A stretch of DNA of 64,000 nucleotides from Macrostomum lignano (Eukaryota): contig NIVC01003111.1 of assembly GCA_002269645.1 (NCBI GenBank), positions 1 through 64,000 of the forward strand, written 5' to 3'. The position numbers were made by a program, and so were the translations under genes. This document shows positions 222 through 56,842 of the stretch, one piece after another (positions within the stretch are counted from its first letter, which is position 1; each line of letters starts with the position of its first letter). Below the pieces are notes generated by a model, which made no database searches, was not told the DNA's origin, and was given only the letters and a program-made list of their open reading frames with translations.

Positions 222-3200
222 CAAAACTCGACAATCATAGAAGAATTCATGTTTCTACAGCACAGCTAGACTTGTTCGGAAACTCTGCAGGTAAGACGGG
301 ATCGGGATCAGGGATCGGATCAGGGATCGGATCAGGATCGGATCAGGGATCGGGATCAGGGATCGGGATCAGGGATCGGGATCAGGGATCGGGATCAGGG
401 ATCGGGATCAGGGATCGGGTCAGGGATCGGGATCAGGGATCGGGATCAGGGATCGGGATCAGGGATCGGGATCAGGGATCGGGATCAGGGATCGGGATCA
501 GGGATCGGGATCAGGGATCGGATCAGGGATCGGGATCAGGGATCGGGATCAGGGATCGGGATCAGGGATCGGGATCAGGGATCGGGATCAGGGATCGGAT
601 CAGGGATCGGGATCAGGGATCGGGATCAGGGATCGGGATCAGGGATCGGGATCAGGATCGGGATCAGGGATCGGATCAGGGATCGGGATCAGGGATCGGG
701 ATCAGGGATCGGGATCAGGGATCGGGATCAGGGATCGGGATCAGGGATCGGGATCAGGGATCGGGATCAGGGATCGGGATCAGGGATCGGGATCAGGGAT
801 CGGGATCAGGGATCGGGATCAGGGATCGGGATCAGGGATCGGGATCAGGGATCGGGATCAGGATCGGGATCAGGGATCGGGATCAGGGATCGGGATCAGG
901 ATCGGGATCAGGGATCGGGATCAGGGATCGGATCAGGGATCGGATCAGGGATCGGGATCAGGGATCGGGATCAGGGATCGGGATCAGGGATCGGGATCAG
1001 GGATCGGGATCAGGGATCGGGATCAGGGATCGGATCAGGGATCGGGATCAGGGATCGGTCAGGGATCGGGATCAGGGATCGGGATCAGGGATCGGGATCA
1101 GGGATCGGGATCAGGGATCGGGATCAGGGATCGGATCAGGGATCGGGATCAGGGTCGGGATCAGGGATCGGGATCAGGATCGGGATCAGGGATCGGGATC
1201 AGGGATCGGATCAGGGATCGGATCAGGGATCGGGATCAGGGATCGGATCAGGGATCTTCTTATCTCGCTTTCCGTTACCAATTAGGGTCGCAACGCAAAG
1301 TCAATCGAGGTGGTCACAAAGCGGCTCAACTACCTCACCTGGGATGAGGCTTTCATCTGCCTCACTGATGAGGATCTGCCGGACCAGCTGCGAGCCAAGT
1401 ACTGCGAGCTCATCACCACCATGTTCGTAGACGTTGACGACAACATCAGCGTGCTGGACAGGATCGACCTCACATTCGTATATGACGATGTTTCAAAGCA
1501 TTCGCAGGCCAAGACGAGTGAAATGGTAAGTTGAGCTCTAATTTATTAAACTGAATTGATGGCTTTGAGAAGCTGCTTCGCGCTTGCCGGGAAAGGAATT
1601 TAAAGTTTCTAAGCTTAGAATTATTGTATTAAGAGCAACAAACTCACTCAACTCTTCCCGCAGACGACTCTGAGAAACGCCTCAACCAGCGCTACTTCCC
1701 AGCCTTGCGCGACTGGTTGGCCAACTTTCTGGACCAGAACCACGACATGACGGCCTCGGAGGTCGGGCACAACATTCTGCTTGCGCACGTGATGCAGATG
1801 CTGCATTATCTGGTGAGGTTCGGATACTACAACTCCACCACCGACATCAAGAAGCTTCTCAAGCCGCTGCTGGATCTGCTGGACGGACGAAACGACAAGC
1901 CACTGCCAGAGGTGCATAATTTATTGTAGTCCAGGCTTCACAGCCTTTAGCAAGAATCCTGATCTTTTCCTGAGGAATAATGGGTCTAATTTAAAAATTA
2001 CTTTAATCCATTTAACTTGCAATTTGATCCACACTGACAATTGCAAATTTGATTCCGGATATCTGGGACGCTTTTCGATGCTGTATTTCAAACTGCGATC
2101 CCATGGCCGCACTTTCCAGGCGCCTTCTCCGGCGGGATGGTGGCAGATGTGGCAGGAAGTAAATCAGCATTTTTGGCTTTCTAGAGTCAAATATTTATCA
2201 GCATTTTAAAACTATAGACTTCTCTGCTTGAACTATTTAAACTGTACTTTACCATTCTCTACGATACTCTTACATCATTTCGTACACAAACGTACCGCCA
2301 GTTCTGTACACTGCCAAAAACTTCCTTGACCTATCCTGGAACTTAAATTTACTTGCTTCGCTAAAATGTTTTATAGAACAAACGTCTGACGCTACGGCTT
2401 GTAGTTTGAGAGCCGACGAACCTTTTTGCGAACACGTAGTTTAGTTTTGATGTCAAATTCCGAAACTAATTCCGAATCGAATCTACAATCTGCAGCTGCC
2501 ACAACTGACTATGACAAAGTGCTGCAGCACTACCAGACGGTGGATCGCTACAAAAAATCCAGGGAAACGAAGGCTGTGGTCGATGCAAAGCACCAGTAAG
2601 TTGGGGCGTTTACAAAACTGCCGGTTGACGTGTCAGTATTAGTGAAAGAAAATGGTGACACCTTTCAGAGCGATGCGAGTTCTGGATCTGTTTTTCAACT
2701 TTCGATTCAATGTTCGCCTAAAAAGGTTTGTGGCTGAGTTCAAGGATGTTCAGTTTATGGCGCAGAATACCTTGAGTAGCGCTCAGGATCCACTTGCTGG
2801 CTTACTGAACGAGAATTACGACCTAAATAAAAGGTGAGCTGATCCGTTCAAAGCTTGCTAGTCTCATACTTTATGGAGTGCATACAAATATAGCCGTGAT
2901 GAAGTAACCTGTTAACCTTATTCAGCATCGATACGGTTGCGAGTCAGCGACTGGCAGAAATGTTCACCGAGTCCTCCTATTTCAAGGACTTCGACATCGT
3001 CAATGTTTTGCTCGTACGTCTTGATACGCTCGACAGTTACAAAAAAATGCATAACGTATAGGGATAAGTTAGGCTTTTCCGAAAATTTAAAAGCACCACG
3101 TTTCAAAGCTTCTTTTGAAACCGCTGCAGGACCTGAGCCACTATGAGTACCCGAAGATGGTGCAGATGTCAATGTGGCTGCTCAACCGTTACTACTCAGC

Positions 3201-6200
3201 GCACAACCTGCTGTTCAAGCGAGCAGTGCTGGCCAGGTGCTCATCACGGACAAGTCGGTCGCGGTGCACAAAATGGTGGACGATGAAAGTCACGTGATGC
3301 GCCGGCTTATCGGCTCCAAGATGACAGACTCCGATGTGGAAAAGATGTGCTCCATTCTGTCTAAATTTAGCAGGTAAATTAATTATAAAACAGATTTATA
3401 AAACTAATACAAAGCTAGCTACGCATCCATGTTACAAAAGGCGTATAGCCTACTCGTAGTGATGACACTTCATGAAGCCCAACAATTATTCAGATAGCTG
3501 GGAAAACGTTATGAATTGACAAAGCGATCAATACACCACTTACTCGTACGAACTCATCAGGGTCTGCCACCTTGAAGAGGAGCCAGAAGAGAGGCACCCG
3601 ATGAACCAGGCGATTCTGTACAACCACGGACTTCTCAACGATATTTTCGATCTAGTGTCTCAGGACATCGACATCAACCTGCTGGTAATTCGGTCGAGCC
3701 GATTTAACTTACCGTATCGAATCATCAAAATTGAACTGCGATGCCGTGAAATGCTGTATTCCAAGGTTTTAAGAGTTCGTTCGGCCTAACGCAAATGAAC
3801 TAGAAATTTTCTTTAAAGACCATGTTACTCAGGACTAAATTTGAAACGGCCCCAACATACATATTCCCATAACTCAAGAACGTTGTTGTGGACAACGAGA
3901 CGAGATTAAATGTTCAGGTAAGAGCAAGTCTTTCCTATTGATTGCACCATTGACAACCAGAAGCCCGGAGATTTTTTCTCAACCCATCACGCACACGGTT
4001 TGTCTAACCAGGCTGGCTTTGCAAGGCCAGCCTGCCATGAGCTGTTCAGTCCATCGCACTTTTCTCAGCGTTTCATTGCACCAACCGGAAAAGTTTTTGT
4101 CTCAAATTACCTCTCAATCTTGAAACCAATGAATACATTGCCGTTTTGTCTCATTTTATTTGCCAAGCTGTCTTGCCAGTTCCATTTCCTAGACATAAAC
4201 TTCAAATACGTAGCGGTTCAAATTCTACCAAATCGTTAACACTTCTTTGCCACCCATTTGCTTCTTCAAGACCGCGCGCAATTCAAAAAAACAAAAGAAG
4301 AAAAAGGTATATTTTCCTCATTTGTAGATGAGCATCTGATGCACACAGAAAAAATTTGAAGCTGCTTCCTTGAGTTTTCGATTCACCACCTGCTTTATCG
4401 CACAGTACTACAGAGTACCTGTAGCCTGTTTTGTACAATGCTAAGGATAGAATGTTTCTTTACTGAAAATTACACCCAAAAACTGTACATGAAATGTTTT
4501 CGCACGGCACATTTGAAGTGCATTTAGTAGCTGTCTAAAAACATTACATGATAGCCAAATACGTAAAGAATTTCACTCGGATTTACTAATTGTCTAATTT
4601 TTTGTTGTTTAAATAACTGACGTTGTTGTGCTCACTTAACTCTACTTTTCCTACTCTTTCTTTAATAACTGAATTTTCGCAGTGCTACGTACAAAATGCT
4701 TAAGTTATTGCGAATTCGCTTCAGGACGAGTACAGCGGACTTCGCAAAGTGTTCGCCAAGTGCTTCAGTCTGCTGCGCCTCATGGCCAGAGGAAACGCGG
4801 TCGTACAAAACCACCTGTTCGATCGCCTGGACGCCCTGCTGAGCTGCGTTGGCGCCGAGTCCGAGCTGGCCCTGGCTCTCGCTGAGGTGTTCACTGGAAA
4901 CAAGAACACCTGCATGAAAGTTCTGCCGCATCACATTGCCAGAACTATGTCACTGATTGCTCAGCATGGGCCGAGAGCCCCAGAGTTCCTGGACATGCTC
5001 AACGCTCTGGTGAAGGTGGAGGAGCTGGACTTGCCGCTCAAGCGCAACCAGGCCTACGTGATGAAGTACTTCATGCAGCAGCGAACGGACGTGGCTGAGT
5101 GCCTGGACCAGGACAAAGAGGTCCAGCAGGGTCTGCTGCGATCGCCAACTCGCACGCCGGAGTCCGACTACATGATCGCTCTGGTCGACCTGCTGGCTAC
5201 CTGTGCTGAGGGCGAGAACCGCTTCATCGAGTCCATCAACCAGACCATCTACAAGGTGAGCGACGTGCTGGCGATTCTGACGGACCCCGCCATCCCGAAC
5301 CACAACAAGCGGCCATTCGCGCGCTTCCTGCTGTGGGTCTACCTCAACACGGCCGGCGGGATCATCGAGAGCGGAGCCGGAGACCTGCCGCACGACGCCA
5401 ACATGTGGCAGCTGTTCGGCATGGTGAGGGAGGACCTGAGGCGCATGGCGGAGCTCGCCGTGGAGAGCCCGCAGCTTGTTCGACAGCTGCTGAAGATTCG
5501 CGTCTTCAAGAAGTGAGTTTATCAGTTGTCACAGCTATAAAAAACGAACAGCAGACTGTCTCTTTGTTGCGGAGCACCAACTGTCTTCTGTCACTAGTAA
5601 GACAGATTCTAGAAAAAAACATTTCACTGTTGTGAATCCAATACGTATCAACTGCCTCCACCAGGACTTTCTCACTCAGAGACAGCCCAACACCCGAGAC
5701 CTTGACCGAATCGCTCATTCTCAGCTCTACTAGAGTGCACTAAGAAATTGCTCACGTAACCGGATCTAGCTTCGCAAAGACAATACAGTTTGATGCCATA
5801 TCGCGCTTTCTTGGATGGGATATATTGACGAAACATGACGCGACCCCTGAACAGAACAAGCTCTTCGTCGACACTAATTTCCTTTTCTGGCATGTATGCA
5901 CTGCGACAAATCTCAGCTACACGCGTAATAAATGGTCTTGCCTTTGCTAGCAAGTCGTTTCCATCGAAGTTGTTGCAGTCATAGAAGCGCAGCTGGCTAC
6001 TGATCTGTTGGTACCTGTCCCTTGTCAGGCAAGCGAGTTGTTGGAAGAAAGGTGTTGCGTAGAAATCATCTTTGCTCCAATAGTTGGCGATCTCGGGCTT
6101 TTTAACTATTCCCATGTAAAGCAACATGGCGACAAACTTTCTTCATCTCGTCCACGGTCACGTTTTTCCACGCAGAGAACCTTTGAGGCAGGTTTGGCAT

Positions 6201-9200
6201 CGATGCTTGTAGCTCGTCGAATTTGCGCCATTGGTCCAAGCGCAGAACTGTTGCAGCAGGTCAGCAGTCAGAAACAGCTTGAAAAACGCAGCTGGATCGT
6301 CATCAGCAGTCTCTGGCCTCGGCAAGTCAGGATCCACACCAGGCATTCCCCAGAACTCGGGGTCTGCATCTGGCCGTTGATCCTGCCCAGCTTCCCGTGC
6401 CACCCAAGCATCAGTTGACAAGTCTCCGACGTCTTCATTTGGCTGGAGATGCAGGTCCTCCTCCTCTTCATCTTTACCCTTGTCCGCTGTTAGCCAGCCT
6501 TCCTCCTCCTCTAGTTCGGAGTCGGTATCCGGATCAAAATGCATTTGAGCCGCAGCCATGACAAACACTGTCCGACACTTGGAAATTATTGCACAAAATA
6601 AAGTTGCTGATCGATGATTTAATTAATCAGCACTTGACTTTGATCATTTAGCTTCAAACTTTACCCACCCACCCGTCCATCCACCCCACTCCACTTTGTT
6701 TTTTGCTTTTATGTTTATCGTTTATTGCTACGAGTATAAGCTAATCCGCCGGCTATCGCTGGGTACGGGGGTGTAAAAATATTCTGTAATAGTCTATGGC
6801 CTGCTTGGGTTAACTTGAGCTGTTGTTCGTCCACGTCAGCAAGCGAGCTATCTGTTGTTATTTAGCACAGCGGCATTTATACCTGAGCAAGTTTGCTGTT
6901 CCAGTTCTGTCCACAGACACTGTTGCACTGCGTTGCAGGAAGCAGCCAAGTCTGCAAGTGATCGACTATGAGGCTCAGAACCCTGTGCCGGTGAAGATTC
7001 AAATGTAATGTAATATCCAAAAATTCATGCATCAATTTTGTTGCCAACGGCATGAGTGTATACAGAAATATCAATATTATTAGTCGTATAGCCGCGATTG
7101 CCATTCCTAATAACGGATCAAAAATCACAATCATAATTCCTTTTTCACGCATGCTTGTGCAAGTATTTATTACTAAATTATTACTCATTTTTCTCCCTAT
7201 GCGGGCTTACATTATTAGCCGCATCTGCTGACAATACCGCTTTCAGGCACAAGAGGCACTCCTCAAAGAGGAGGCGATCGCACAAGCACAGGCTGGAGTC
7301 GCTGCCCCAAGTGTAATATGAAAATCTGCTCCGCATGCGCTCTCCTCTGACCTTTGAGTGCCGTGGGGTGGTAGTTCCGCTTTCGGTTTTAATCTGCTTT
7401 AGATAGCTCGTCCCTGTCGCAAGCATCCCTGAGTTTGTCTCTTCTCTGCTAGCTTTAAGATACTCGTAGGACTTTTGGTTAATGCAGAGCAGTGAGATTC
7501 AGCTGACTCATGCTTTGCAGTTTTACCTTAACTTTTTTGTATTTTCATCGGAACTGAAGTCTCTGAGCCACTGAAATCTGAGCCACTTCGGGTTACTGAG
7601 CCCGTTTCCATTTTCGATTTTCCTGATCTAAGAATTAGTAGATATGTGTCAAATAGAAAAATGCACTTTTACTCATGCTAAAAAGTACATGATACCCTTT
7701 CTGTTTTATTGATGCTGTGCCTGCAAAATTTGATAATCAGAAAGTTAATAGGAGAACCGTCCCGTTGCAGCGAGATGGAAGACCCATCCAGCAAGGAGAA
7801 GCAGGACATGACAGACGAGGCTGCTCACGGCACCCTGAAATACCTGTTCGAGGGAGCCCTCCCCGTGGTCAATGTACGTACAGTAAAATTACGCGCACAG
7901 GTTGCCTTAAGATTGTTCAGTAAATAACCACTTGAAAATTCTCTTCTAGGCCTTTTTCAAGAGCATTTACATCAAGGACTTGGAGGATCACCCGAACGAA
8001 ATAGAAGAGATTAACAAACTCGCCAAGATTCTCATCGTAAGAGAAAAAGATGTCCTTTGATGGTAGAATCTGTTTTTTTACCCATGATACAAAAGATTCT
8101 GCTAATTTACTGGCCTGCTGTCCCGTTTACGCAGAACTTCATCGAAGCAGCAATGCCACTAATCTCGGAGGAAAAGTACGTAAAGTACCTGCTGAGCAGT
8201 GCAACCAGCCTGCTCACAGTTTGCACCCTGCCTGCTAAAGTGAGTAGCGCTGAAACTGGTTGTTTGAAAAAAAAAAGCAAAACATATTTCATACACAGTG
8301 TTGATTGTTTTTCAACAAACACCTACAGGACAGGCAAATTAGCAGTCTAAAGGTGAAACAAAAGGTTTGAATGGGACAGAAGTTACAATACTTTCTTGAA
8401 TCTTAGTTACCACGAACACTGATTCCTGGACAAATTAAATTAATAATTAAGCATTATAGCGCTACGGAAATTGCATTATTGATTATTGATATAAGTCCGA
8501 CCGAGCTTGTAATCTATGCTCTAAAAGACTCAGCTATCAAAAATGCTAATATTGATTTTTGGATAATACTTAAGATGAAAGGCGCCAATGTGCAGTAGTT
8601 TTCTCTGATTTATGACCGAAATTGTACCTCGTACAGTAAGACTTGTGCATTGTGCGCCTTCGTAATATAAAATTCACTTGATTCTGACATCTGACAAAGC
8701 GACAAAGCGAAAAAATGAAACTCATCAAACGATTCGATGAAATGCCTTTTGAATTTCCGAATGGCTTCTAAAACATTAATGGCCTTTCCTTTCTCCGATC
8801 AAACTCTGACAGGCTATTGAAGAATTTCGCGGAAAATACGGAGGAGGCGTCCAAATCAACTGGGACGTCAGAAGCGAGGCTCGAAAGGTGCTTAAGGAAA
8901 CAGATTGTATTTTTGAAAAGGCATTATGAACAGAAAATTTGAGAAAAAAATATTTAATCTAATAAACTTCAGCGATACGAAGAGTACTACTCATCCGAGG
9001 AGGAGCTGAACGTGCAGCTAAACGTGTTTGCAACCAACTACAGCATCTCTTACGGAGGCGAGAACACCGTCAAAGACCAGATCGGCTTTCCCAGCGACCA
9101 GGGTTCGTTTAAGAAGTTGATGCGCTTCTTGAAGACAGAAGTATTTAACCTAGGCGTTTTTACCCTTAGTCATTTTCCTTTAGTTTTCTACCTGCCATCC

Positions 9201-12200
9201 CGCCCTTGTAGTGTTGCCGGAAGATTATAGTAGTACATTATACTCGATGAAAGTCTACCAGAATGTGGAAACATTTTTGATTCAATAAGTTCTTATCAAG
9301 TTTGCAAGTAAACCGATCAAATAAGCTAGGAATATATGATGGACTCTTTTAATTCCTAGTGCAATGCTTCACGCTATGACAGTTCGAAATCCAAACTCCA
9401 AAACCAATCCAAACCACGCCAGAATACACTGGAATTGGCAGCGACGAAGAGCTCCCTCTCGGCAAGGAGTTCCAGGACCACGCGGCCTGCTTCATCGATG
9501 CCAATCGGCCGATCTCGGACCCACAAAAGTACAAACTTACTGGGAAGCTCGTGGAACAGCTTTTGTGAGTAAAAGATATGCTTTGTTTTGAGCTTATATG
9601 CTTGACGCACGTGTCTACATATTGCCACTTGGAAATTGCCATCATTGACAGCATCTCCAACCAGATGGAGCTGAGCAATGAGAAGGAGCGCATTGAGCAG
9701 GAGATCCTTGACGTGAAGTGTCTTCAACTGCTGCGGGCCATCATACACAACGAGATTGTCAAGCTGCCGACCAACTTTGACACCGTCGACTTCAAAGAGT
9801 AAGTGCCTTTTTTGTCTGCTTTTTCTCTTCTGGGAGTCTCACATGAGCTTTAAATGTCGTTGCAAAAAATCGCCTTCCATGTTCACTTCTATCTGAGCCT
9901 ATTAGTGCACTGCACTGCATTAGCAAGCCGCTGGTCTTTCAGAATGGCTGGTCGAGGAAAGAAACTATATTACAGGTAAAGGTGCATTCGTACCGACAGT
10001 TATGTGGAATGCATCAACACTGGTAGCATTAAATGTGTCTTGAAGTTACTCTGGTAACCTTTTAAATACTATCTGATAAAAATTTTCTATTTAATGATTG
10101 TACGCTTGTAGAAGCGAAGCTTTATTATACATAATTATATATCGCGTGATTTTAATTAACACCGAAATGTGTTTTAAACATTTGTGGATTAATCATAATT
10201 CAGATAGCAGATGGCGATTAACGCATTTCAAGGCAGCAATCAAGGCATTCGAGCAGTTCAATTTTGTTCATCAATGAGTGGTCAGGGTCTTTTACCTGTA
10301 GTTCTGGTATGAAATTTACTCAAATTGACGACATGCTGACTGTGGTAAAAGGATTGTGCTGATTGTGGTAAAAGGCTGTCGTTGAAATTAAATACATTTT
10401 TCTGAGTCATTCTGGACTTATATTCTGGCTGCCATCTATTAACTCTGGAAAACACTTCCAGATCTGAACTTTGAGATTGGTCGTACCTTCCTTTTTTATT
10501 TGTCAGTTTGTTGATACTCAACATCTAATTGTGATTAAGTGGGCCGCCTTGATTCGTCGCTCACTAATGTTCGTTGAGCCTAATTTTGAAAATCGATTGC
10601 TGCGCAGTTAAATCGATAAAAATCGCGCTGACTTCCAGACGAATCGCAGCGATCGCTCAGGTGCAGATGGCGCTAAACAAGCACGACGCCATGCTGAAAG
10701 TGCTGCCGCACTTATCCAAGCAGTCGGACGAGATCGTGCGCGAGGTGCTCAGCTTCCTCGCCAACATGCTGTTCAACGGCAATGAAGAGGTCCAGGGCAG
10801 CCTGCTGGACTATTTCTACGGCACTCGCGAGGAGAAGTTCTTCGTGGCAGTGAAGAACCGGATCAGCATGTCCTCCATGGCCTGGAAAGAGAAGTGAGAG
10901 CAATGTATTTTGTTTTATCCCTCACCTCTACTTACCTTTATGATAGGTTCGAAGCACTATTCTGTTGAGCAATCCTTTAATCTCACAGCCGAGCCCTCAT
11001 CAATCAGCATCAAGCGAAAATCGAGGAAGCCATCGCTGAGCTGCGAGACCTTCAACAGGCAATGAAGGAGGGCCGGATCTCAGCAGAGGCGCTCCAGGGC
11101 AGCAAGATGGGCTCGATGCTGCTCAATCTGAAATCAAGCAAGGGCAGCATCACTGGCAGCGGGGCTCGAATGCGGGGCAGCCGGAGCTACGCACTTGGCA
11201 GCACTGCGGAAATGCGGCGGCGGCAGACTCGAAATCAAGGATCAACGGCTCAACTTCGAGCATCTCGCAGCAACCTGCATGACGTCGGCGGAGGCGGTAT
11301 TCGCAACCACGGTTTTACTGGCGATAGTCGAGGCCCAGGCTCCACGGACTCAACTCGTCAGCTGATCAGAGGTGACGCGACGGAGATGCAAAACATGGGC
11401 CAAGAGGCACCGAGCCACGCCACAGGCAACCGGGTGGCGCCAGCCGACGCGGCCACTTCAAACATTGACGAGGGTGACATTGAGGAACTGGCGACGCGGA
11501 TTGTAATGGAGGATGAGAATATGCAGATGAAGGACGACGGCTACATTGAGCTGGTGCTCCGCGTGCTCGCTTATGTATGCGACGGGCAGAACACTAAGCT
11601 GCAGGACTACCTGAGAGAGCAGCCGGACAACATCAAGTCTATCAACCTGGTGGCGGAGACTTCACGTTTCCTCGGTCTCACCTACACAGCCATCAACAAG
11701 TCAAGTATATCGCTAATAATTCAAATATTTGACTCGCTGGTCGAGTTTGCCTCTGGAAACCTCAGCAATCAGGCCGTGTGCTACGACAACAAGGTTTGTG
11801 ACTACATTAACTACTTGCTACGGTCTAAGCAATCCTATTCAAAGTGCGGTCTGCAAGAGGAAATGGATTTGAAGAGATCCATTGCGAACCTCATCGTGGC
11901 CATGATCGAAGAGAATGTTAAACGTGACGCTGAGCGCGACGCCTCTGAGCAGGCGGTTGTCGGCGCCGCGGGAATCTCGCATTTGGAGAAGAGGCTGAAA
12001 GCCATCGCGGGGGTTGCCGATGAAGTCAAAGACACAATCGATGCCGACAGCATTCTGAATGTCTTTGTCGACTGCTATAGGCGACATCTGGACGCCGCGC
12101 TGGACAGAGACACGCGGGAGTCGATTATAGCTGTGGGATTCAAGTACTTTCACATCTTCCTGCGTTTCCAAGATCTCGATCATATGAAGACCGTTAACTT

Positions 12201-16511: not shown

Positions 16512-16788
16512 CGTTCGGTGGCTCTTACAGACTTGCAACTTGGTTTTGCTAGTGTGTTTAAGAAGAGATCTTGAGAACGGACTAGTTCATTGCCGCAGTT
16601 TTTTGAAGAATTTTTGTTAAACTTTTCCTCCCTCTTCTGTGGTGCAAAAATCACAGATGGAAAACTCAAAAAGTTTAGAGCTGTTTTTTATTTTACACCG
16701 TTCTTGGTTTTTACTTACCGAATATCTTTCCACCGGGTTGGCAGGTCTCATAAATATTTTGACATCACTTCTCGACTAATTAAAAGAG

Positions 16789-16801
16789 TTTATTTAATAA
16801 A
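16789..16801. terminator. candidate bidirectional polyadenylation signal between convergent genes 1 and 2
   Basis: TTTATTTAATAAA: AATAAA on + at 16796-16801 and on - at 16794-16789; first canonical hexamer downstream of each stop codon. Confidence 0.35.
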
Positions 16802-17817
16802 ACGCGTAAAATTGAATTCTTTGAAGGCTCTTGCAAAAGAATTTTGCGAACCCGGTGGAAAGGTGTGGGCGCTTTAATTGTAAAGCTGCCTGCGAAATGA
16901 AAACTACGAGTACCTGTTTGGCTCAGCTCATCGCTGGTCAGCCTCTTGCTAAAAATCATTCTTTCACTTTTTTGCACCTTTTGTTGAGTTATTTTTTGCT
17001 GTTATCATTTGTTTAGACGGGAGCTTCGACAATTGCTTTTTCAAAAAAGAAAACCCAGAAAAAAGTACTGCCGTCCTTAGAGATGACTATTTTATACTGA
17101 TTACTTTTGGTCCTTCAAAATTTTGATTGACTATCAAGATAAGTACACCAGTTTAACTACCCACGGAGTTAAATACTCAATACGCAATACGCAACAAAGA
17201 CTCTTTTCGAACTACTTTATGAGAAAATAATTACTGCCAGATTTAGTGCACTCAAAACTTACTGCACCGCCCTGAATAGCTTCAGTGTATTTATCTGCGA
17301 GTGTCTTGCATTGTATTAAACGGTTTAAAAAATTGATTGTATCAGACACATGAAGTACGGCATGTGGTGCAAAAACAGGGCATCTGGAATATCTAAGAAG
17401 CTTTCGGCAGTGCATCTAGAAAGCAGGATTGGCTACGAAAGACGCTCGATTTGGTAGAATCAGGACACACGAACCAGGGTAGAAAAGTCAGTTGGAAGAA
17501 TTTCTTGGCTTTGCAAATCTGATTGGAAAAAATAAATAATCTGTGTTAAGAAGCATTCTAATTCTTCTACAGTTAAGATACTAACAGTTTTTTGATTAGA
17601 AAAAAATGAAAAGCAAAAGCATGACAGAAACTGGTAAGATAAATATATCGTTATGCCCACTCGTAGAGGGCGTACTTGTGAAATTTCTCTGGCACCGCAG
17701 CATTGGCAGAACTGTCGCACAATCAACGGTGCTGGGAGAAAAAAGCTTGTCAACTTCGCTGCATGCTACACCCATCTCTATTTAGTTTTCAACATTGCAA
17801 CCGAGCAGGAAAGCAGG

Positions 17818-34315: not shown

Positions 34316-34373
34316 GGAAGCGGCAAGTTGCAACAACGCTAAAATGCGCCTACCGGAGCTCGCCTAAAGGGCG

Positions 34374-34386
34374 CTATATATTTAAA
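34374..34386 (-). promoter_or_regulatory. TATA-like element upstream of gene 2
   Basis: TTTAAATATATAG on the minus strand ~60 bp upstream of the ATG, within GC-rich flanks. Confidence 0.3.
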
Positions 34387-45000: not shown

Positions 45001-48000
45001 TACTCGTCCTAATAATAAAATTTAAGTTTGAGCCTATTTTTGAAAAGTAAACTTGTAATTATTTGTAAAGAACATTTTAAAAAGAAAATTCCATGAGAGG
45101 AAAAACATTTCGCAAATGAAGTGGACTTGCTGGCTTTAGAACTTGAAGTTACGAGCGTATAATATGAATTTTACCTAATATTGAGACTTACCAGCAAGTT
45201 AATATCCACGTCTTGAGAAACCAGGTCAAAGATCTCATTTAGTATGCCGTGGTTGTACAGAATGGCCTGATTCATCGGGTGCCTCTCTTCTGGCTCGTCG
45301 TCCAGGTGGCAAACTCTGATTGAAGGGAATAAATGAAAATTTTGATTTATTCGTTCCCTTTAATGTAGGCTGTACTAACAAAATATCTTCCGATTTTGCT
45401 TACTTGCAGAACTTCGTTAAAATTGCGCACATCTTTTCCACGTCTGCTTTGGTCATCTTAGAGCCGATAAGTCGGCGCATCACGTGACTCTCTTCCTCGA
45501 CCATCTTGTGCACGGCTACAGACCTGTCTGTGATGAGCACCTGGGCCAGCACTGCACGCTTGAAGAGCAGGTTGTAAGCGGAGTGGTAACGGTTAATCAG
45601 CCACATAGACATCTGCACCATCTTCGGGTAGTCGTAGTTGCTCAGGTCCTGAAATTTTTTATCTTAGTCACTTTCAACATACTCAATGGTTAATGGTGGG
45701 TTTAGGCAGCTCACCAGCAAAACCTGCACAATGTCGAAGTCCTTGAAGTAGGCAGATTCCGATAATATTCCGGCCAAGCGTTGGCATGCGACGGAATCCA
45801 CGCTGAAAATGGATGAGCACTATGCTCTTATCTCCCGTAAGCTAAAAATTCTGACTCTCTCACATCGTTTCCAAGAAGCTCACCTTTCATTAAGCTCATA
45901 TGTCTCGCTGAGCAAAGCTGTCAAAGCGTCCTGAGTGGATGAGCTCGTACTCTGCGCCAACTGGTGAATTTCTTTGAACTCGGCAACAAATCGCCTCAGG
46001 CGGACATTGAAACGGAAGTTGAAGAGCAAGTCTAGAACTCGCATCGCTCTGAAAATACAGTTTGCAGATTCTACAAGTATTTTCTACACCTGTGTCCGAA
46101 AGTGAGATTCGAACTCGTGAGCTGCTCTGAGTTGTCACTTGGTAAACTGAAATTGGACTGCACCTTTGGTCACTTACTCGAACATCTATCTGATATTCAA
46201 CAGTTTAACACTCTTTCCTTTCTACTTTTTCTATAGGCGACCTCGCATACATGCACTTCATGTGCAAGTACTGGGCAAATGCTCAAGAAATCTTACTCGT
46301 ATTTTGCGTCCACCACGGCTTTCGTCTCTCTAGATTGCTTGAATCGATCACCAGTTCGATAGTGCTGAAGCACCTTGTCGTAGTCGGCAGTTACAGCTGC
46401 AGTGAGGAAAAGATTGATTTCACACCAGTATGAGAAACCCGCATAAAGTTACCTGTGTGGTCTGAAGACAATATTTTAGTACGATAACAGTTCCTCACAA
46501 GAAGTTATCGGTGCAATCAGTTTCTATGAAATATTAATTCCAAATAAGCTATCAGACAACATTCGTGACAAATGAAAAATAAATATTTGTGTAGAATGAC
46601 AAAGGCCTGTGCATGTAGCTCGTACTATGTATTTTTTTACTCTACGTAAATAGCTTTCAATATTAACAGTAAATCGAATTTAATAAATTAATAAAATGTA
46701 AAAAAAATTATTCCATTTTCTTGTGAACAGCTTCTTAGTGGATACAATTAACTAAAACTAATGTTTTGCACAGTACAATTCCTCGTCAGAACTTTTGAAC
46801 AGAATTAATAAACTTTTTAATTTAAAAAATATTTTGTGAAATGAAAAATCTAAATATGAATGTGAACTTAATAGCCAGTTGAGTGCGTAACAAATGCACG
46901 AGAGCTTTGTGAGATCAACAGATAAATAAAGATTTTTACATCCTGCAACATTAGCAACCATGCCACCCAATAGAGCTCCTGCAAGTGTTAAAGATAATAG
47001 ATTTTATTCTTCTTTACCTAACTGGGATTACCTCAGTTTTAAGCCTCTTTAGAGACTTCAATAGATTTTTCAAATAGATCAGGTTACCTTTTGGCAGCGG
47101 CTTGTCGTTTCGTCCGTCCAGCAGATCCAGCAGCGGCTTGAGAAGCTTCTTGATGTCGGTGGTGGAGTTGTAGTATCCGAACCTCACCAGGTAATGCAGC
47201 ATCTGCATTACGTGCGCCAGCAAAATGTTGTGCCCGACCTCCGAGGCCGTCATGTCGTGGTTCTGGTCCAAGAAGCCCTCCAACCAGTCTCGAAGTGCTG
47301 GGAAGTAGCGCTGAGTCGATGCCTTCCTGGATGTGTCCTGAAATTAACAGGTCAGAAGCTATGGCTGGAGACTCACAATAGCAAATGTTGAGCTTGAATG
47401 CTCAATCTTTATTTGGATTCTGAAACCTACAATCTCTACTAGCTGAGTAGCCTGCTGCTCCTTGCTGCGCTTTGCAATATCGTCATAGACGAAGGTGAGG
47501 TCGATCTTGTCCAGCACGCTGATATTGTCGTCAACGTCCACGAACATGGTGGTGATGAGCTCGCAGTACTTGGCTCGCAGCTGGTCCGGCAGCTCCTCAT
47601 CGGTGAGGCAGATGAAAGCCTCATTCCAGGTGAGGTAGTTGAGCCGCTTTGTGATCACCTCGATTGACTTTGCGTTGCGACCCTGGATTTATATGGAATG
47701 CGACAATGTACTTAAAATCAGCATGAAAGAGCAATGGGTTCAGTTTACGCACAAAAAATGATGCTGTTGTCTTCATTTACCTGACAAAGCTTGCCGAACA
47801 GGTCGAGTTGATGCTCCAGAAAAAGGAAGTCTTGTATTATTGTAGCGTTTTGCTGTAATGAAATCATTTCACGGGTACATCGCATTCAATAAGGTTGAGT
47901 TGAGTTAAAGCGCAAACTTCCATAAATCCGAGGCAAAGCCAAACCGGATGTGCTGGCTCGAAAATTGATGCTACTGGTTTGATAGGCGTTACCTGGCAAT

Positions 48001-51000
48001 GGGCCTTTGTCTTTTCTTCAGTGGTTTACGAACATTTGTACTTTAGTGACGTCGTTTATTAACTCCCACCATGAGCTACTTGTGTTTGCACTTTCCACAT
48101 TCATCTCAAATTTGACGCCCCGGAACTCAAGCTTGTTGCTAAAGCTACTCATACTAATGAAATACCTATGTCGCAATTCGGCTTTAAGGCAGAATGGTGC
48201 TCACCTCTTCAGGGCTAAGCTTCCGTGCGTTGCGTTTCTTCTTGCGTGACTTGACGTGCGTGATCTGCACTGAGCCGTCAGAGTTAAGCTTTGATGAAGC
48301 GACCGCTGATTGATACTTCAACCAAGTAATATGAAAATTTTTTAAATTTGTTGGTTTGCAGATGCAATTCAAGAACTTGGTTTTGATATATAAGTATGCA
48401 CTAAAAAGTGCCTCACATCTTTAGCAAAGTTGGCAAGCGATGTCCAACGTCTTCTGTTGTCAGTGGACACGAACACTTTGTCTTTCTCTTTGCCCACCTC
48501 CTGTCCAAGATCCGTGAAGAAGACCAGACAGAAATTCTTGCCCTCCACCAGCCATTTCTCAGTGATGTAGTTCTGGTTCTCCGGCATGCTCAAACCGTCG
48601 CAGACGCACAAAATGCTCAGCAGTTCGATATACCGAAAGTTCTTTAGGGAGTCGATTATGGAAATTTCTTGCACTCATTGCCTGCAGCAAAACTCTCTGA
48701 AGGTATTTTATCTGTCTCCCATTATCCTTACCCGATTCTGTTTGAGAAGCTCCATTATCTCGTCGATGTAGCTAGTAGGAATGCGGTCAACAATCTTTCT
48801 GTTATCCATGATAAGCTCCTTGATCATGTGAGCGGCGCTGAGACCCACTTCCTCCTGGGTAAGAAGCAGTTTTTTTATTAAGCGCAAAACTCTGACGCTA
48901 CGTTCACGAATGTTAGCAGGAAATTCACACTTTAGAAAGTTACAACGGATGAAAGTATGCATTTTTGGCAAATTGGTTCATCGTAAATTAGAGATTCGAA
49001 CTCGTGATAGGCCAGAACCAGTTTTTGAGTTCTTACTCGCTGTAATCTGGTATTAACCCCGTTGAGCCAGGGCCCACATGTAAAAATCCTAAGTTCTATT
49101 AAACTAACAGTGAATTAAATTTTTGCTCACACTATCAGAGATCTGCATTCTTTCTTTGCTACTTTTCAGTAGGCAATATGCAGTAGGGATGGAGATAAGA
49201 TTATCACACACAATCTATTTCTGTTAAATTCAGACTATCTCTGAAACAAGTATGATTTTACCTCTTGTTATTTGTGTTGCACGCAGCAAAAACTCCAATC
49301 GCTAGCATGAGTTAGTGGTTAAAATTGTGAATTTGAAGCCACACTATCAGTGTTGTATGGCACTTACGCAATCTGAGGAAGTCTGAAAAGTGAAAGGCAG
49401 TTCATCTTTACGATGCACAATTTCTGGTGAAGAGTACTTCTTTTTGCCTGGCTTTTATTAGTATCGATTGATTTTTACTATGAATTCCTGATTTCTGGAG
49501 AGATATCAACCAACAAACCTCACCTCAAGGACAATTTGGCTGCGAAAGAAGTCAATGTGCTTCGCTATGTAGAGCTCATTTTTGCGACAGTCGCCCATCA
49601 GGTAGGTGTACAGGACTTCGTAGCACTCTACAAAAATCTTCACCAGATACTGCTGGTCGGCTGCTCCTCGGAATGGCGTCTGCAGCAGCCGCACCAGCAG
49701 CTCCACGATCTGCTCAAGTGCACGTTTGGTTAAAAAGATTAACACGAGTTCTCCCACCATTCTTTTTGACTCAAGTACTGAAGTACTAACAAAGCCACTT
49801 ACCCTAAGATTCCTGAGCAGCTTCTGCCGCTTCTTGACCGGCTCGCTGTTGACGATCATGAAGTCGCGCAGCTCGCCCAGCGCCGTGACAATCAAATGAC
49901 AGCGGTAGGCGTTCAGATGAACTGCATCTGGCTGCTGCTTTCGCTGAAATGTTTTGTTACCGATTAGTCAGAGAAGCATTGGTTTCCTCAGCCAAACTAT
50001 TATTCAGACTCAAAGTTAAATAAAATAGCAAAAGTGCGTCATTTCATTGTAAAGTGCAAAATGTGGTGAGAAAGAAACATCTGTGCGACTTATATACAGT
50101 GAGATCGGTGCAAAGAACAAATACTACATGAACTTTCGATTTCACTGACAAACATCTCCGTAGCGGAATTGTGAATAATCTGTTAGATGTTAATCGATAA
50201 ACTTTATGTATTAGGGTGTGTTTGAATTTTTTCATAGAAAGGTAAAATAACCATGTTACCTCCCCAGCAGCAGATCCAGTTGGCTTGGCCGACTTATCGC
50301 CACGAAGCTAAAAGCAAGCCAGTTAAACACGCAAGGTCAGCTGCTGAACCTCAAGTTAAATCCCCCGGGGGTTTAATAGCTCGTACTGGCTCTCGTTTTG
50401 TGTCTACAGGTTCCGAGCAAAGAAAATTTCTCCTCGAAAATCAACAATTATCGAAAAACTTCCCGCGCTTCTCTCACCTCGTGGCAGAGTTTCTGGACGA
50501 ATGGCACGGCGCCGGCTGCATAGTTGAAAATGTTCACCAGGTCCTCCTCAACAGCGTAGATGGTAAAGGCGTCATCGAACTGCATCTCCTGGACTATGCC
50601 TACCTGTTGTCATTGTGGATAAGAGACCGTTTTGACAAATGTTGTATGGAACGTAAACTGGTCGAAAATGAATATGGGGAAGGTACTTTTCCAGGGTCAG
50701 CTCGCTGGGGGGGTCAGTCAATTTCATGGGAAAGGGTAGTTTTTAATAACCCTTAAAATAACGTTTCATTCAAGCTCCCACTCCCAGTTTTTTAATTGAG
50801 CACTGAAGCTGTCTGAAAAAAGAAAAGTACAGCTCGCACTAGTAAATTAGTTCGGCAGCTGCCCCCTCCCATCTCCAAAGTTCCGATGCGTTCGCTGCAA
50901 AATCCTTCCTCTTACCTTCTTCAATGGCGCCTGGGACCACACCAAACCGGCCATCGAGTTGGAACTGCCGGTCTCTTTGTCAATAGCTTTTCGAACGTAG

Positions 51001-54000
51001 TCCTCTGCAACACGGATTGAACAAATTTATTCGACTTCATGTCAAATTTCATGTATCAAGCACACTAATGAACCAATGGAAATCCCTTCTACCTTTGCTG
51101 CCGTGCATCAGGCGCCAGTAACCACGTGCTCAATCCTGCAGTAGCTTGAGTCTTCGATCTCGTCCCGCTCCTGTTGTATAATTAAACAGTGAGTCACACA
51201 GTAATTTTACGTGAGAGAAGCGTCGGTAAAAATCTGTTGGGCAACTGGCCCTACACTGAGTTGTAAAATGCACAGCAGAGAGAAGCATATAAAAAATGTA
51301 TACGTTGCGGCGTAAAGCATTTCTCGTTTATAATTCTTGGAATTTGAACTTTTACATATCAATAATTCATATCCGAATGAAAGCGTGCAAAGAGGTGCAG
51401 CAGCTTATGTGCCTTCGTGTGGTCAATTTCGAACTCACGCTGAATTTGAGCTTCTTGTTTTTATCAGCGGATGCAAACTTAAAAGTTAAAGATAGTTGCT
51501 TAATTCTATTCGAGTCAAAGCGACTAATTTTAAGTTGTGTTTTTATACTCAAGGCTTTTATCGACCTCCTACAAAATACGTACGAGTGTTTACTCACCCT
51601 GAGCACAGGATGCAGCCGGAACACGGCTCTGGCGTCCTTGCGGTCGTCTGTGAGCGCAAGACGGCCATCCTTGTTGATGGCGAGGAATTTCCTGGTGCAC
51701 ATGTGCCGGATGCGCACCTGCTGCTCCCACTTGATGATGTCGCCGCTGATGCAGCCCTCGAAGAACTCCAGCTGCCAGTAGCAGATGGCGGATGTGGGCG
51801 GGAACATGGTCTTCGGCTTTGTCTGTTCGACAGCTCGGACTCGCAGGTGAACGTCTTCGACTTCGGGCTCGTTTAAGGTGCCCTCACACACCAGGTAGGC
51901 CTCCAGCTCGGTGTGGAAGAACCTGACGGGCTGTCCGGCTCGTATCTTGTTGGCCTCGTCCTCGGTCTCGTGGTACCGCCTGATCAGTGTAAAGCCGCTG
52001 AACCTCACGGACAAGTTGAGCTCGTAGGAGTCCGCGTACACCGGCATGTGGGCTTCGAACTTGTGCCGGCTGACGTGCAGGAACTGGCCGGGACTCTTGA
52101 CGCTCTCCAGCACCACCTGGTCCTCAATCTGCACGAGGTCGCCCTCGCCCTTCACTTTGAAGCGCGGCATCACGCGGAACAAGGCGAAGGCGGCGTTCTC
52201 GCTGCTCAGCGTCACCTGCATGTTGCTGCTCTCCGTCGGCGACGTGTTCTGTGTGCTGATGTGCACGAACTTTCCGGTGAAAACATGCTGCAGCTGCACC
52301 ATCTGGCCGTACAGCACCTTCTTGCCTTTCTGGCGCCTCTGCTCGAGAGCATTGTCCTCCTCCTCGGCCGCTGCCGCGATCTGTCATTAATGTTTTTGAT
52401 ATTTGGTTTTTCTTGCTCTTGAACTGCTAGTCCTTTCGACTGGTCTGCAACGCTCAACTCCATTTTCCGCCTCATCTTAGTCAGTGCATAATCTTAGTAA
52501 AGTCACTTTTGAGCAGTTCATATTCTATTAATGGTTTCAAAAGACCATTTTTAGTATATGGATGTTAGGGATTTAGTGGTAGGACGCTGCACCCGGCACC
52601 CCAAAATATATATTGCCATCGGCGGTTGCAGGGGCTCGCTGTCCGGATTGTATAGGGCCTTTTTCCTCGTGTTTCCATTTTTGTGACTTGAACTGACTTT
52701 TATCAATTACAAGGTTTTTCGCACAGCTTTGAAAAAAGCACACAACATTTCCCTACACTTACCTTGGCCTGTGTTAGCTGGGCCATTTGGGCCATGTTGC
52801 CAGAGTCTTCAATGCAGGAGGCGGCCAGCTTTCTGTAAGCCTTCTGCAGTTTGTAGCGGTTCGCAGCGCAAATTCTGAAGGACAGAACTGTATGGGAGAA
52901 ATGGTTAGTGAAAATTCCTTCTTCATTGGGACTGAAAACAACATTTGCACATACAGTACTCGTAAATGGTGTTGCATCGTTGAAGTCAGGGCATCTGTGT
53001 ATTTGCTCACTAGTAAGGTGGCGAAAGTTCTTAAAGAAGAAGTTTTTGTTCAAAAAATATAGATATGATGGGTCCTTGATGATGGCAAAAAAGGTTGGAG
53101 TTGTTTCCGGAGTTAACAGTTTCCGGAATTTCTCCTGAAATGGTTGGTTGTCAAAGCGAAGTCAGGTCGCCAAGCTCACCCTGTGCGTCGGGGCATCGCG
53201 GCTGCACCTTGTCCTCTTTGCTGTTCACTGCCAGATATGCGTGAGCGGAACTGCAAGTCAAGCAAAGTTGGGCATCCAGATATTTTTTATACTCTCGGAT
53301 CTGCTTACTAGAAAATGTACATGAATAAGCTAAAACATGGGCCCCGCTCAGGAGCCGGAGTAGCCCCAGCGGCAAATACGTCTGACTGTCGCGCGCACGA
53401 CCCCTGTTTTGAATCCGTTCGGGGCCACATTAATTTATGGTTTCTGTAACGTTGGTATTCATCGATGAGCTGGAACCTCGCCAGTGAGCACGCAAAGTTC
53501 TGTTTACCTATCTGTTTAACTATCAGCCGTTCTACACACGCAGTAAGGGATTCGTTTCACATTCCTTTCTCGCTACTGTTTAGTAGACGGTCACTAGAAT
53601 AAACTTAATGGCGGTTTATTGGTGCGGTTTTAAAGACGAACGAAGAAAATACGCAGCACAATTGATCTTGGTGTTCTCAAACAATCGGTCTAAAGGTCTG
53701 TAAAAGCGCTGCAATCTCGCGCACTGAAGAAGCTAAAATATCTTCAATGTACCTTTTATTAGTAATTTTCAAAGATTTGGGGTGGGGGTGGGGTGCCGGT
53801 GGAAAGATGTTCTGTGTTTGCACGTACATTTAGATCGTTAATAATTAAACATGAATGTACGAAGCAAAAGTACGAGCTAAAATAAGCAAAAATGATAAGG
53901 GGAGCCGTAGCCCAGTGGCAAAGCGCGGCACTCTGATGTACCAGCGGCCCAGGCTCGATTCCAAGTGCAGTCACATTAATTTGGGGCTAAATTGGAATCT

Positions 54001-54534
54001 CGGCTTGGGCCTGCTCGTGCAATTGACGCGGCCTTCAGGGCCAACCTCCAAGGCACAGTGAAGTGTACATGCCAAACGATAAATAAGTTAGGGCCACTGT
54101 GCACCCTGTGTGAGTGCCTGTGCGTATGACTGCGTACGTATCCGCGCGCTAATGTCTCTCACCGGTTGTGTGACAACCAAAAGCAACTGCACGAGCAGAC
54201 TACTAAAAGCAAACAAATATATAGCTGATCACCGCTGATCGTCACAATCGATGCACTTCTGTCAATTTCATAAATGTTTCATTTATTTTCATATTGTAAT
54301 TTCACTTCCTGTTCTTCCTAAAAAATGAGGTTCTACTAAACTTCACTATGGCTTCAAGGGGTTTTATAGCAAATCGCCTTTGAGGCTTTCAACGCCAGTA
54401 TTTAGGAAGTAATTTAATCCGGGTACTTTAAAGCTAGCTACTCACCTGGACTGCGTTGCGAACACGTATCCCAGTGCATCGTCCGAGTACAGGGCAATTG
54501 TGTCGCCGATGCACAGAACGTCCTCGCCAGCCAT
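36033..54534 (-). CDS. ITPR: IP3 receptor-like Ca2+ release channel, gene 3 (39 exons, ~2,700 aa)
   Basis: ATG at 54534. Exons: 54534-54446, 53250-53180, 52887-52763, 52380-51598, 51170-51093, 51004-50916, 50603-50478, 49943-49803, 49709-49524, 48854-48732, 48641-48417, 48315-48205, 47852-47781, 47682-~47440, 47337-47088, 46396-46297, 46048-45884, 45802-45715, 45648-45404, 45315-45192, 45008-44221, 44114-44046, 43971-43881, 43799-43713, 43638-43534, 43448-43374, 43207-43078, 42997-42856, 42719-42573, 42503-42471, 41910-41656, 41374-40046, 39542-39183, 38769-38543, 38451-38276, 37558-37331, 37164-37045, 36781-36644, 36203-36033 (TGA). Same intron positions and phases as gene 2; one -1 deletion near 51109. 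Confidence 0.92.
37331..37558 (-). CDS. gene 3 exon 36 (S6 and zinc finger)
   Basis: ORF 37310..37516. Confidence 0.92.
39183..39542 (-). CDS. gene 3 exon 33 (S1-S2)
   Basis: ORF 39179..39502. Confidence 0.88.
40046..41374 (-). CDS. gene 3 exon 32 (RIH-associated domain)
   Basis: ORF 40042..41322. Confidence 0.9.
43276..43305 (+). other. truncated tRNA/SINE-like 5' fragment in gene 3 intron
   Basis: GGGGTTGTAGCATAGTGGTTAGAGC has an A-box match; no B-box follows. Confidence 0.3.
44221..45008 (-). CDS. gene 3 exon 21
   Basis: ORF 44217..44984, translation matches the gene 2 ORF. Confidence 0.9.
51598..52380 (-). CDS. gene 3 exon 4 (beta-trefoil/MIR region)
   Basis: ORF 51367..52317; 783 nt as in gene 2. 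Confidence 0.9.
53899..54172 (+). mobile_element. tRNA-derived SINE-like element, copy 2 (first intron of gene 3)
   Basis: A-box TAGCCCAGTGG (53908-53918), B-box-like GGCTCGATTCC (53952-53962); body shared with 18020-18372. Confidence 0.7.
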
Positions 54535-56332: not shown

Positions 56333-56842
56333 GAGGAATTACCGAGATGTCAAGGCTGACGGGAGGAATTGCTGAGATGTCAAGGCTGACGGGAGGAATT
56401 GCCGAGATGTCAAGGCTTACGGGGGGAATTGCCGAGAGGTCAGGGCTGACGGGGGGAATTGTCGAGATGTCAAGGCTGACGGGAGGAATTGCTGAGATGT
56501 CAAGGCTGACGGGAGGAATTACCGAGATGTCAAGGCTGACGGGAGGAATTGCCGAGATGTCAAGGCTGATAGGGGGGAATTGTCGAGATGTCAAGGCTGA
56601 CGGGGGAATTGCCGAGATGTCAAGGCTGACGGGAGGAATTACCGAGATGTCAAGGCTGACGGGGGAATTGCCGAGAGGTCGAGGCTTACGGGAGGAATTG
56701 CCGAGATGTCAAGGCTTACGGGGGAATTGCCGAGATGTCAAGGCTGACGGGAGGAATTGCCGAGATGTCAAGGCTTACGGGAGGAATTGCCGAGATGTCA
56801 AGGCTTACGGGAGGAATTGCGAGAGGTCAAGGCTGAGAGGTC
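56333..56842. repeat. 30-bp minisatellite, ~17 copies (GCCGAGATGTCAAGGCTGACGGGAGGAATT)
   Basis: units directly visible from 56341, with a few length variants. Confidence 0.95.

Follow-up and report, generated by a model that had tools for sequence, protein, structure and literature searches.

Three IP3R-B-like channel genes, apparently a lineage-specific duplication, in a 64-kb window of the flatworm Macrostomum lignano

Layout of the locus

The locus described here is a window of 64,000 nucleotides (nt), positions 1 to 64,000 of contig NIVC01003111.1 of Macrostomum lignano, and the subject is the cluster of channel genes that it carries. Composition and the listing of open reading frames (ORFs) mark it as a eukaryotic, intron-rich locus. 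Long ORFs with RIH_assoc, RIH, Ins145_P3_rec, and MIR domains occur at three sites, one on the plus strand and two on the minus strand, and belong to three paralogous genes of the IP3R/RyR superfamily of intracellular Ca2+-release channels, here called A, B, and C. As a preliminary description of this DNA stated, the three fill exactly positions 222 to 54534, the former being the first visible exon base of A and the latter the A of the ATG of C on the minus strand. Domain content, homologue searches, and a tree support the reading that A, B, and C are a lineage-specific duplication within the known, poorly characterised IP3R-B family. That family is the least understood branch of the superfamily, and the window contributes three paralogues to it.

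The gene models (Table 1) come from nucleotide and translated comparison of the three regions, a splice-junction solver, three-way alignments of exon boundaries, and phase checks. Counts are of coding exons, exons of untranslated regions being invisible to models built from sequence only. A and B lie tail to tail, 1.3 kb apart, and C follows B in the same orientation, with the ATG of B 1.7 kb from the stop codon of C. Protein identity is 92% between B and C and 77% between A and each of them. All three had been described as genes for proteins of about 2,700 amino acids (aa) with an identical 39-exon architecture. The shared splice phases and positions stand; the exon number does not, since 36 coding exons are counted, and the common size does not either, since only B and C are complete and A is visible from exon 12 onward. 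From exon 19 to exon 36, A maintains an unbroken reading frame of 1,596 aa.

Homologous exons of the three genes agree in the phase and position of their splice sites, and all boundaries but one are AG/GT. The exception is a GC donor (G/GCAAGT) of exon 25 of B (24451-24580, the donor lying just below 24451), where A and C have GT. The donor of exon 16 of B is weak, GTAGCT, and its counterpart in A and C is GTGAGC. Could a coding exon have been missed? The B protein is collinear over its whole length with the 2,567-aa Patella caerulea protein KAK6195687.1, in a single BLASTP high-scoring segment pair (B 4-2599 versus 2-2563, 48% identity), so that the 36-exon model lacks no coding exon.

Table 1. 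Positions of the genes, exons, motifs, high-identity tracts, single-base gaps, and minisatellite in the window
Feature	Position	Strand	Remarks
Gene A, partial	222-16511	+	Exons 12-36 of 36 coding exons, 5,946 nt; window begins inside intron 11
Gene A, exons 12-18	222-290, 1286-1525, 1664-1911, 2496-2595, 2669-2833, 2926-3013, 3130-3373	+	
Gene A, exons 19-25	3561-3684, 4725-5512, 7771-7873, 7950-8036, 8135-8239, 8813-8887, 8973-9102	+	
Gene A, exons 26-31	9423-9564, 9652-9798, 10639-10893, 10989-12386, 12660-13019, 14181-14407	+	
Gene A, exons 32-36	14534-14709, 15142-15369, 15491-15610, 15792-15929, 16323-16511	+	
Gene B, complete	17818-34315	-	36 coding exons; 2,636 codons once one base is restored
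Gene B, start and end	ATG 34313-34315; coding sequence including stop codon ends at 17818	-	
Gene C, complete	36033-54534	-	36 coding exons; 2,633 codons once one base is restored; ATG 54532-54534
HLRVRAVE	B 32999-33022; C 51826-51849	-	Aligns with the LRTTGR IP3-contact loop of IP3R1
CDGQ	A 11578-11589; B 22225-22236; C 40843-40854	A +; B -; C -	Ca2+-activation site
Pore filter RGLIAGIYD	A 14683-14709; B 19969-19995; C 38276-38302	A +; B -; C -	Replaces GGGVGD/GGGIGD; two residues shorter
Conversion tract example, exon 20 block	B 25699-26498; C 44215-45014; A 4723-5523	B -	B versus C 99.0%; A 93.8%
B/C blocks with whole introns	31382-31778/49519-49916; 29082-29867/47080-47864; 19962-20498/38269-38806		95-97.5% identity
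A exon 12, three single-base gaps	262-290	+	69 nt versus 72 nt in B and C; in-frame TAG at 264-266
A exon 14, two single-base gaps	Exon 1664-1911; gaps near its ends, about 1663/1686 and about 1907	+	248 versus 250 nt
A exon 18, one-base deletion (CCC to CC)	3232-3233	+	GCTGG-CCAGG versus GCTGGCCCAGG in B and C
B exon 17, one-base deletion	Exon 27401-27487; gap 27479-27480	-	GGATTC-GT versus GGATTCCGT in C; 87 versus 88 nt (A, C)
C exon 5, apparent TGA plus one-base gap	Exon 51093-51170; lesion 51108-51110	-	GCCTGA-TGCAC versus GGCTGGCTGCAC in B; 78 versus 79 nt
Minisatellite, 13-nt unit GGGATCGGGATCA	298-1256		A intron 12; 75.5 copies, 96% matches; about 1 kb, G-rich, strong GC skew

Family placement

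To which branch of the superfamily do the three genes belong? Alzayady and colleagues reportedly split it, in 2015, into IP3R-A and IP3R-B/RyR, with IP3R-B lost in vertebrates. According to an excerpt of a published account, RyRs are said to have arisen from an IP3R ancestor at the base of the filozoans. On the 2,636-aa protein of B, Pfam finds Ins145_P3_rec (6-204), MIR (244-384), two RIH domains, RIH_assoc (1881-1975), and Ion_trans (2307-2466), an architecture identical to that of the relatives in Patella, Saccoglossus, and Capsaspora and matching vertebrate IP3R1-3 (3jav, 6dqj, 7t3p, and others) in domain order and size. No further domain appears at E<=0.01, and SPRY, RyR-repeat, and RR_TM4-6 were not found, which bears out the absence of SPRY domains and RyR repeats asserted earlier. 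Among solved structures, IP3R3, IP3R2, and IP3R1 are the best matches (367-323 bits), and RyRs reach 177 bits in all; significant similarity to RyR is confined to the C-terminal ~240 residues and to short stretches of N-terminal domain.

The motifs of these proteins had been said to lean to RyR. This holds for the short loop between S5 and the pore (S5-P loop) and for some motifs, namely, CxGx and LRxQxxNxxxxN-type sequences and FxELRD past S6, but not for overall similarity, which favors IP3R by 367 to 177 bits. The window proteins further differ from RyRs in lacking GGGIGDE as well as the RyR-type domains, and in being half the size (2,636 versus about 5,000 aa).

Homologues were collected by an exhaustive HMMER search with exon 29 as query against 1.8 billion representative sequences; the best 150 matches were considered, and 20 long proteins among them were named. 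The named matches include IP3R-sized proteins of the molluscs Patella and Pomacea, the hemichordate Saccoglossus, the nemertean Tubulanus, and the flatworm Macrostomum, as well as of Capsaspora (CAOG_04510, XP_004347257.1), the choanoflagellate Salpingoeca, Corallochytrium (by locus prefix), and chytrids. None of the 20 is a canonical IP3R-A, a RyR, or a vertebrate protein, most of the best 150 being unnamed, and no protein of RyR size is among those 150. The 20 named relatives thus match the taxonomic pattern expected of IP3R-B, that of unicellular holozoans and invertebrates without vertebrates. No protein on record is identical to those of the window genes. The nearest sequences are spiralian: a fragment from M. 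lignano is 74% identical over one exon, and Magallana gigas reaches 59%. Over the full length, the nearest known proteins are the collinear Patella relatives (KAK6195687.1 and KAK6195686.1, 48-50% identity), which, like the predicted proteins of Pomacea, Tubulanus, Saccoglossus, and Macrostomum, are uncharacterised.

A neighbor-joining (NJ) tree was built from 275 conserved columns of one C-terminal domain, with 300 bootstraps. Its IP3R-A and RyR references are real database entries, C-terminal fragments fetched with a bait sequence. A, B, and C form a clade with 100% bootstrap support, as do RyRs and, separately, vertebrate IP3R-As, and because of that A+B+C clade the lineage-specific expansion proposed in the preliminary description is supported. 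A split with 97% bootstrap separates RyRs, vertebrate IP3R-As, and chytrids from a group that holds the window genes, their invertebrate relatives, CAOG_04510, and choanoflagellates. In the C-terminal domain, B is 56% identical to Patella, 50% to Saccoglossus, and 48% to Capsaspora CAOG_04510, versus 30% to ITPR1/3 and 29-32% to RyRs. A sister relation of the B group to RyR is left unsupported either way by this tree.

What is the Capsaspora protein? The accession of CO.IP3R-A is XP_004347577.1 (PMC9522344), from which CAOG_04510 differs. CAOG_04510 has a plain IP3R architecture without RyR-type domains, and we infer that it is the published CO.IP3R-B. Literature searches returned, within the collection covered, no text describing IP3R-B or CAOG_04510; the "IP3R-B" strings retrieved were abbreviations, e.g., "IP3R-binding protein." Like CAOG_04510, the window proteins are IP3R sized, have an equal domain set without SPRY or RyR repeats, have lost the GGGxGD filter, and fall in the same tree group. 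The earlier IP3R-B reading is thereby strengthened: the genes lie outside vertebrate IP3R-A and RyR, together with a non-A Capsaspora protein. Nesting inside canonical IP3R-A, which had been named as the outcome that would speak against it, is not what the ITPR1/3 identities, the separating split, or the HMMER matches indicate. For annotation, the label "ITPR1/2/3-like" appears unsuitable for A, B, and C.

Ligand pocket, calcium sensor, and pore

Do these proteins act as IP3 receptors? The Capsaspora protein CO.IP3R-B was reportedly found by Alzayady and colleagues in 2015 to be targeted to the endoplasmic reticulum (ER) but to neither bind IP3 nor release Ca2+ in response to it. No other IP3R-B is known to have been tested. 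In alignment to mouse IP3R1 (5xa0), the LRTTGR loop corresponds to LRVRAV in the window genes: R265 is kept, T266 is changed to V, T267 to R, and G268 to A, and R269 is replaced by a gap or P. In the NRERQKLMR region, R504 is K, and R506, K508, and R511 are unchanged; the counterpart of DYRK is DCRK, in which Y567 has become C and R568 and K569 persist. In all, 5 of the 11 IP3 contacts are retained (R265, K508, R511, R568, and K569) and four or five are changed, and the alignment shows the window genes to be without the complete IP3-coordinating set of canonical IP3R-A. Conservation of the segments HLRVR, RQKLxR, and SRKN extends across the clade as far as choanoflagellates.

The motifs pointed out in the preliminary description are present in A, B, and C, along with the pore sequence RGLIAGIYD. 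One of them, CDGQ, coincides with the Ca2+-sensor site. Its D aligns with E1882 of human IP3R3 (hIP3R3), the first residue of the sensor, and its Q with the ancillary H1884. At this site, CD[GN]Q is present in all metazoan members and CEG in unicellular ones, including the CEGN of Capsaspora. The second sensor glutamate (equivalent to E1946) is kept, as is the Thr before CFIC; the Q three residues past the second Glu (Q1949 of hIP3R3, in our own numbering) is S. In hIP3R1, E-to-D changes at either sensor Glu (E1938 or E2002) lower the maximal open probability, with the bell-shaped Ca2+ dependence kept (PMC9522344).

A short S5-P loop had been reported, and it measures about 10 residues, versus about 70 in ITPR1. 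The canonical filter has been replaced by AGIYD, with a two-residue deletion that recurs in every metazoan member and in Capsaspora, where the replacements vary (DGMYN, ESFHE, GAIFD, GDLLD, and NGLAS). Homologues from choanoflagellates, Corallochytrium, and chytrids retain a GGG[LIV]G[ED] filter. The window proteins therefore have neither the GGVGD filter and long glycosylated S5-P loop of IP3R-A nor the GGGIGDE filter of RyR. The S6 gate motif and the C-terminal Zn finger (CFIC...HxxEEH) are conserved. Patella-type proteins have in common with the window genes CD[GN]Q, the shorter and degenerate filter, LREQPDNxKS, and the three pocket segments, although the Patella filter ends in N (GLSDGMYN) and that of the window genes in D (GLIAGIYD). 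Vertebrate IP3R1-3, at about 25-30% identity, share the equivalents of K508, R511, R568, and K569, the F/I of the S6 gate, the Zn finger, and the second sensor Glu, but differ at the equivalents of T266, T267, G268, R269, and Y567, at E1882 and H1884, and in filter and S5-P loop.

As read from these alignments, three derived traits are common to the metazoan members examined: (i) the sensor E-to-D change, (ii) loss of GGGxGD, and (iii) a half-conserved IP3 pocket. Each supplies a concrete hypothesis for expression or structural work. The window proteins are most likely tetrameric, six-helix channels of the ER membrane, apparently with a working gate, and regulation by cytosolic Ca2+ is likely, because the S6 gate, the C-terminal Zn finger, and a charge-preserving Ca2+ sensor (D/E/T) are retained. 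Whether they are gated by IP3 and select for Ca2+ in the canonical manner is doubtful, because four or five IP3 contacts are changed and the filter is shorter and varies across the clade.

One further speculation, which we consider somewhat unlikely, is that metazoan IP3R-Bs are a functionally distinct class and not IP3-gated Ca2+ channels at all. It is suggested by the combination of features kept (the basic pocket, the D/E sensor, the S6 gate, and the Zn finger) with a GGGxGD filter that has been lost and in whose place nothing is conserved. Such proteins might be channels that differ in permeation and open in response to Ca2+ alone or to another anionic ligand, or they might be nonconducting regulatory subunits. 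If so, the triplicated, conversion-homogenised cluster would mark a lineage amplifying that function.

Gene conversion, single-base gaps, and other features

The similarity of B to C is far from even. Stretches that match at 95-99%, whole introns included, are interspersed with stretches of 67-89% identity and with introns that cannot be aligned. Examples of the former are exon 4; exons 8-9 with intron 8; exons 12-14 with their introns; exon 20; exons 28-29; and exons 31-32. A has patches that are 91-99% identical to B and C, at 1284-1499, 1673-1904, 4723-5523, and 15196-15376. Per-exon synonymous difference (pS) ranges from 0.02 to 0.79. Such an identity mosaic is the signature of repeated, patchy gene conversion among tandem and inverted paralogues. 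The history we propose is that an IP3R-B-type gene was triplicated in tandem, partly inverted, within one lineage. The copies form one clade, agree at all splice positions, have evolved under purifying selection, and have been homogenised by patchy conversion.

Is any of the copies intact? As assembled, none is. Eight 1-nt deletions are present, six in A and one each in B and C (Table 1), and they make up the whole spectrum of lesions, in which neither an insertion nor an indel of more than one base occurs. Stop codons arise at just two sites: the TAG of A, a consequence of frameshift, and the TGA of C, which reflects either a GG-to-G contraction or a substitution plus deletion. A nonsense substitution plus deletion in exon 5 of C was set aside for the more parsimonious loss of one base from TGG ATG: with one G restored, the codons TGG ATG (W M) stand against W L in B (...GGWLHGSK). 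With its gaps restored, exon 12 of A would presumably encode a peptide identical to that of B, and the interior of exon 14 of A is 91% identical to B and C. Inspection of the sequence revealed no alternative splice site that would rescue the frame of exon 17 of B or exon 5 of C.

Substitution patterns were compared among the copies. Ratios of nonsynonymous to synonymous divergence (dN/dS) are 0.159 for B-C, 0.141 for A-C, and 0.144 for A-B; between A and either of the others, synonymous sites are close to saturation. Derived amino acid changes number 64 in B and 68 in C with five other species as outgroups, and 34 and 31, respectively, with A as outgroup. Over exons 19-36, A has 50 and C has 56 with Patella as outgroup, and in homologous frames the lesion-bearing exons 12-18 of A have 10 derived changes versus 20 in C. 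This relative-rate test on exons 12-18 led us to abandon the view of A as a decayed pseudogene in which old lesions had survived where conversion tracts end. Given a dN/dS near 0.15 and symmetric substitution rates, the eight deletions are quite probably assembly errors and not pseudogenisation. Neutral decay is disfavored, because six indels in 1.1 kb predict dozens of A-specific replacements, which are absent. An automatic annotation pipeline would be led by the deletions to call these genes "pseudogene" or "low-quality protein," probably wrongly.

Taken as a whole, the account of an IP3R-B triplication under purifying selection and conversion, with IP3 gating doubtful and the deletions most likely assembly errors, is probably correct. 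Its distance from the preliminary description lies in the gene count and completeness, the eight deletions, the conversion mosaic, the identification of CDGQ with the Ca2+-sensor site, the loss of the filter and the E-to-D change in all animal members examined, and the conserved half of the IP3 pocket. A number of considerations tell against the account. The family tree is an NJ tree of a single domain, with vertebrate fragments as its only IP3R-A references. Function is deduced from residues alone, and the published Capsaspora IP3R-B reportedly neither bound IP3 nor released Ca2+. The lesions are uneven: six crowd into the first 1.1 kb of coding sequence of A, the following 4.8 kb is free of them, and B and C have a single one apiece, so that a uniform error rate is insufficient and a locally poor consensus has to be assumed in the first about 3.3 kb, beside the 1-kb minisatellite. 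Homopolymer context is merely suggestive, the placement of gaps being ambiguous and two-base runs occurring by chance at about 44% of positions, and positions 1257-3400 have a homopolymer density slightly below that of the rest of the window, a difference that is not significant. The call of assembly error was made from the assembled sequence.

What if the lesions are real? The genes would then be IP3R-B pseudogenes that were inactivated recently or are in the course of inactivation, or else segregating null alleles. The 5' part of A would be dead, and truncation would occur at about residue 975 in B and at residue 376 in C. No copy encodes a full-length protein as assembled, exon 17 of B and exon 5 of C have no splice rescue, the lesions fall in blocks without recent conversion, tandem paralogues are often redundant, and in exon 13 of A the ratio of nonsynonymous to synonymous differences (pN/pS) that have accumulated after its latest conversion is about 0.6. 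We nevertheless regard real lesions as unlikely. They would demand three independent and very recent inactivations in genes whose 70+ splice sites are all intact and whose low dN/dS and symmetric lineage rates extend to all copies, exons 12-18 of A included; moreover, each lesion is a 1-nt deletion, and the sole stop independent of a frameshift, the TGA of C, is explicable as a GG-to-G contraction. A narrower version would have only A degenerate or truncated at its 5' end and still in use, with expression beginning at an internal start and yielding a channel-domain protein of ~1,600 aa without the ligand-binding N terminus, next to full-length B and C. That all lesions of A lie within exons 12-18, ahead of an open frame of 1,596 codons with intact splice sites that evolves at the rate of C, fits this picture, but exons 12-18 are equally conserved as protein in homologous frames, arguing that they still code; exons 1-11 may simply lie beyond the window. 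We consider it quite improbable.

The remaining alternative concerns family and not integrity: A, B, and C could be fast-evolving orthologues of canonical IP3R-A, or of RyR, and no separate class. Databases do call their relatives "inositol 1,4,5-trisphosphate receptor type 1/2/3-like," and the best solved-structure matches are IP3R1-3. Rapid evolution would, however, have to account for a most conserved domain that is 29-32% identical to ITPR1/3 and RyR versus 48% to the non-A Capsaspora homologue, for the 97% bootstrap of the separating split, and for a filter, IP3 loop, and S5-P loop that are all noncanonical; for RyR, it would also have to explain proteins of ~2,630 aa with neither SPRY domains nor RyR repeats. 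Such orthology is very improbable, and the IP3R-B assignment is preferred.

Several minor features of the window deserve mention. The minisatellite of intron 12 of A sits amid the six single-base gaps of that gene (264-3232), within about 2 kb of them. It also accounts for a 378-aa ORF (149-1285), which was ruled out as coding sequence. Homopolymer runs of >=8 bases are nearly absent throughout (0-0.2 per kb) despite introns of 55% A+T, a scarcity that could be a property of the genome or could come from a general shortening of such runs in the assembly. Intron 35 of A carries a perfect-looking hexamer array, (TAGGGT) in 11.7 copies at 16067-16136; read in another register, the unit is TTAGGG, the telomere repeat usual in animals, and the array is an interstitial repeat of telomere type. 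Upstream of gene C, a 30-nt tandem repeat (16.9 copies, 91% matches, 56333-56836) is the source of a 193-aa ORF at 56347-56928. Neither that ORF nor several others match any Pfam family, and they stem from repeats or arose by chance; an Rfam scan of the window gave no match. Short tandem duplications of a 68-nt unit (2.1 copies) and a 22-nt unit (2.6 copies) lie at 63389-63533 and 28590-28646. Outside the cluster, an intact 392-aa ORF on the minus strand (59267-60445), to which no protein on record is identical, has a C-terminal CBM_21 starch/glycogen-binding module (E 3.7e-29) and resembles a glycogen-targeting subunit of protein phosphatase 1; a 51-nt tandem repeat (3.2 copies, 59961-60122) lies within it.

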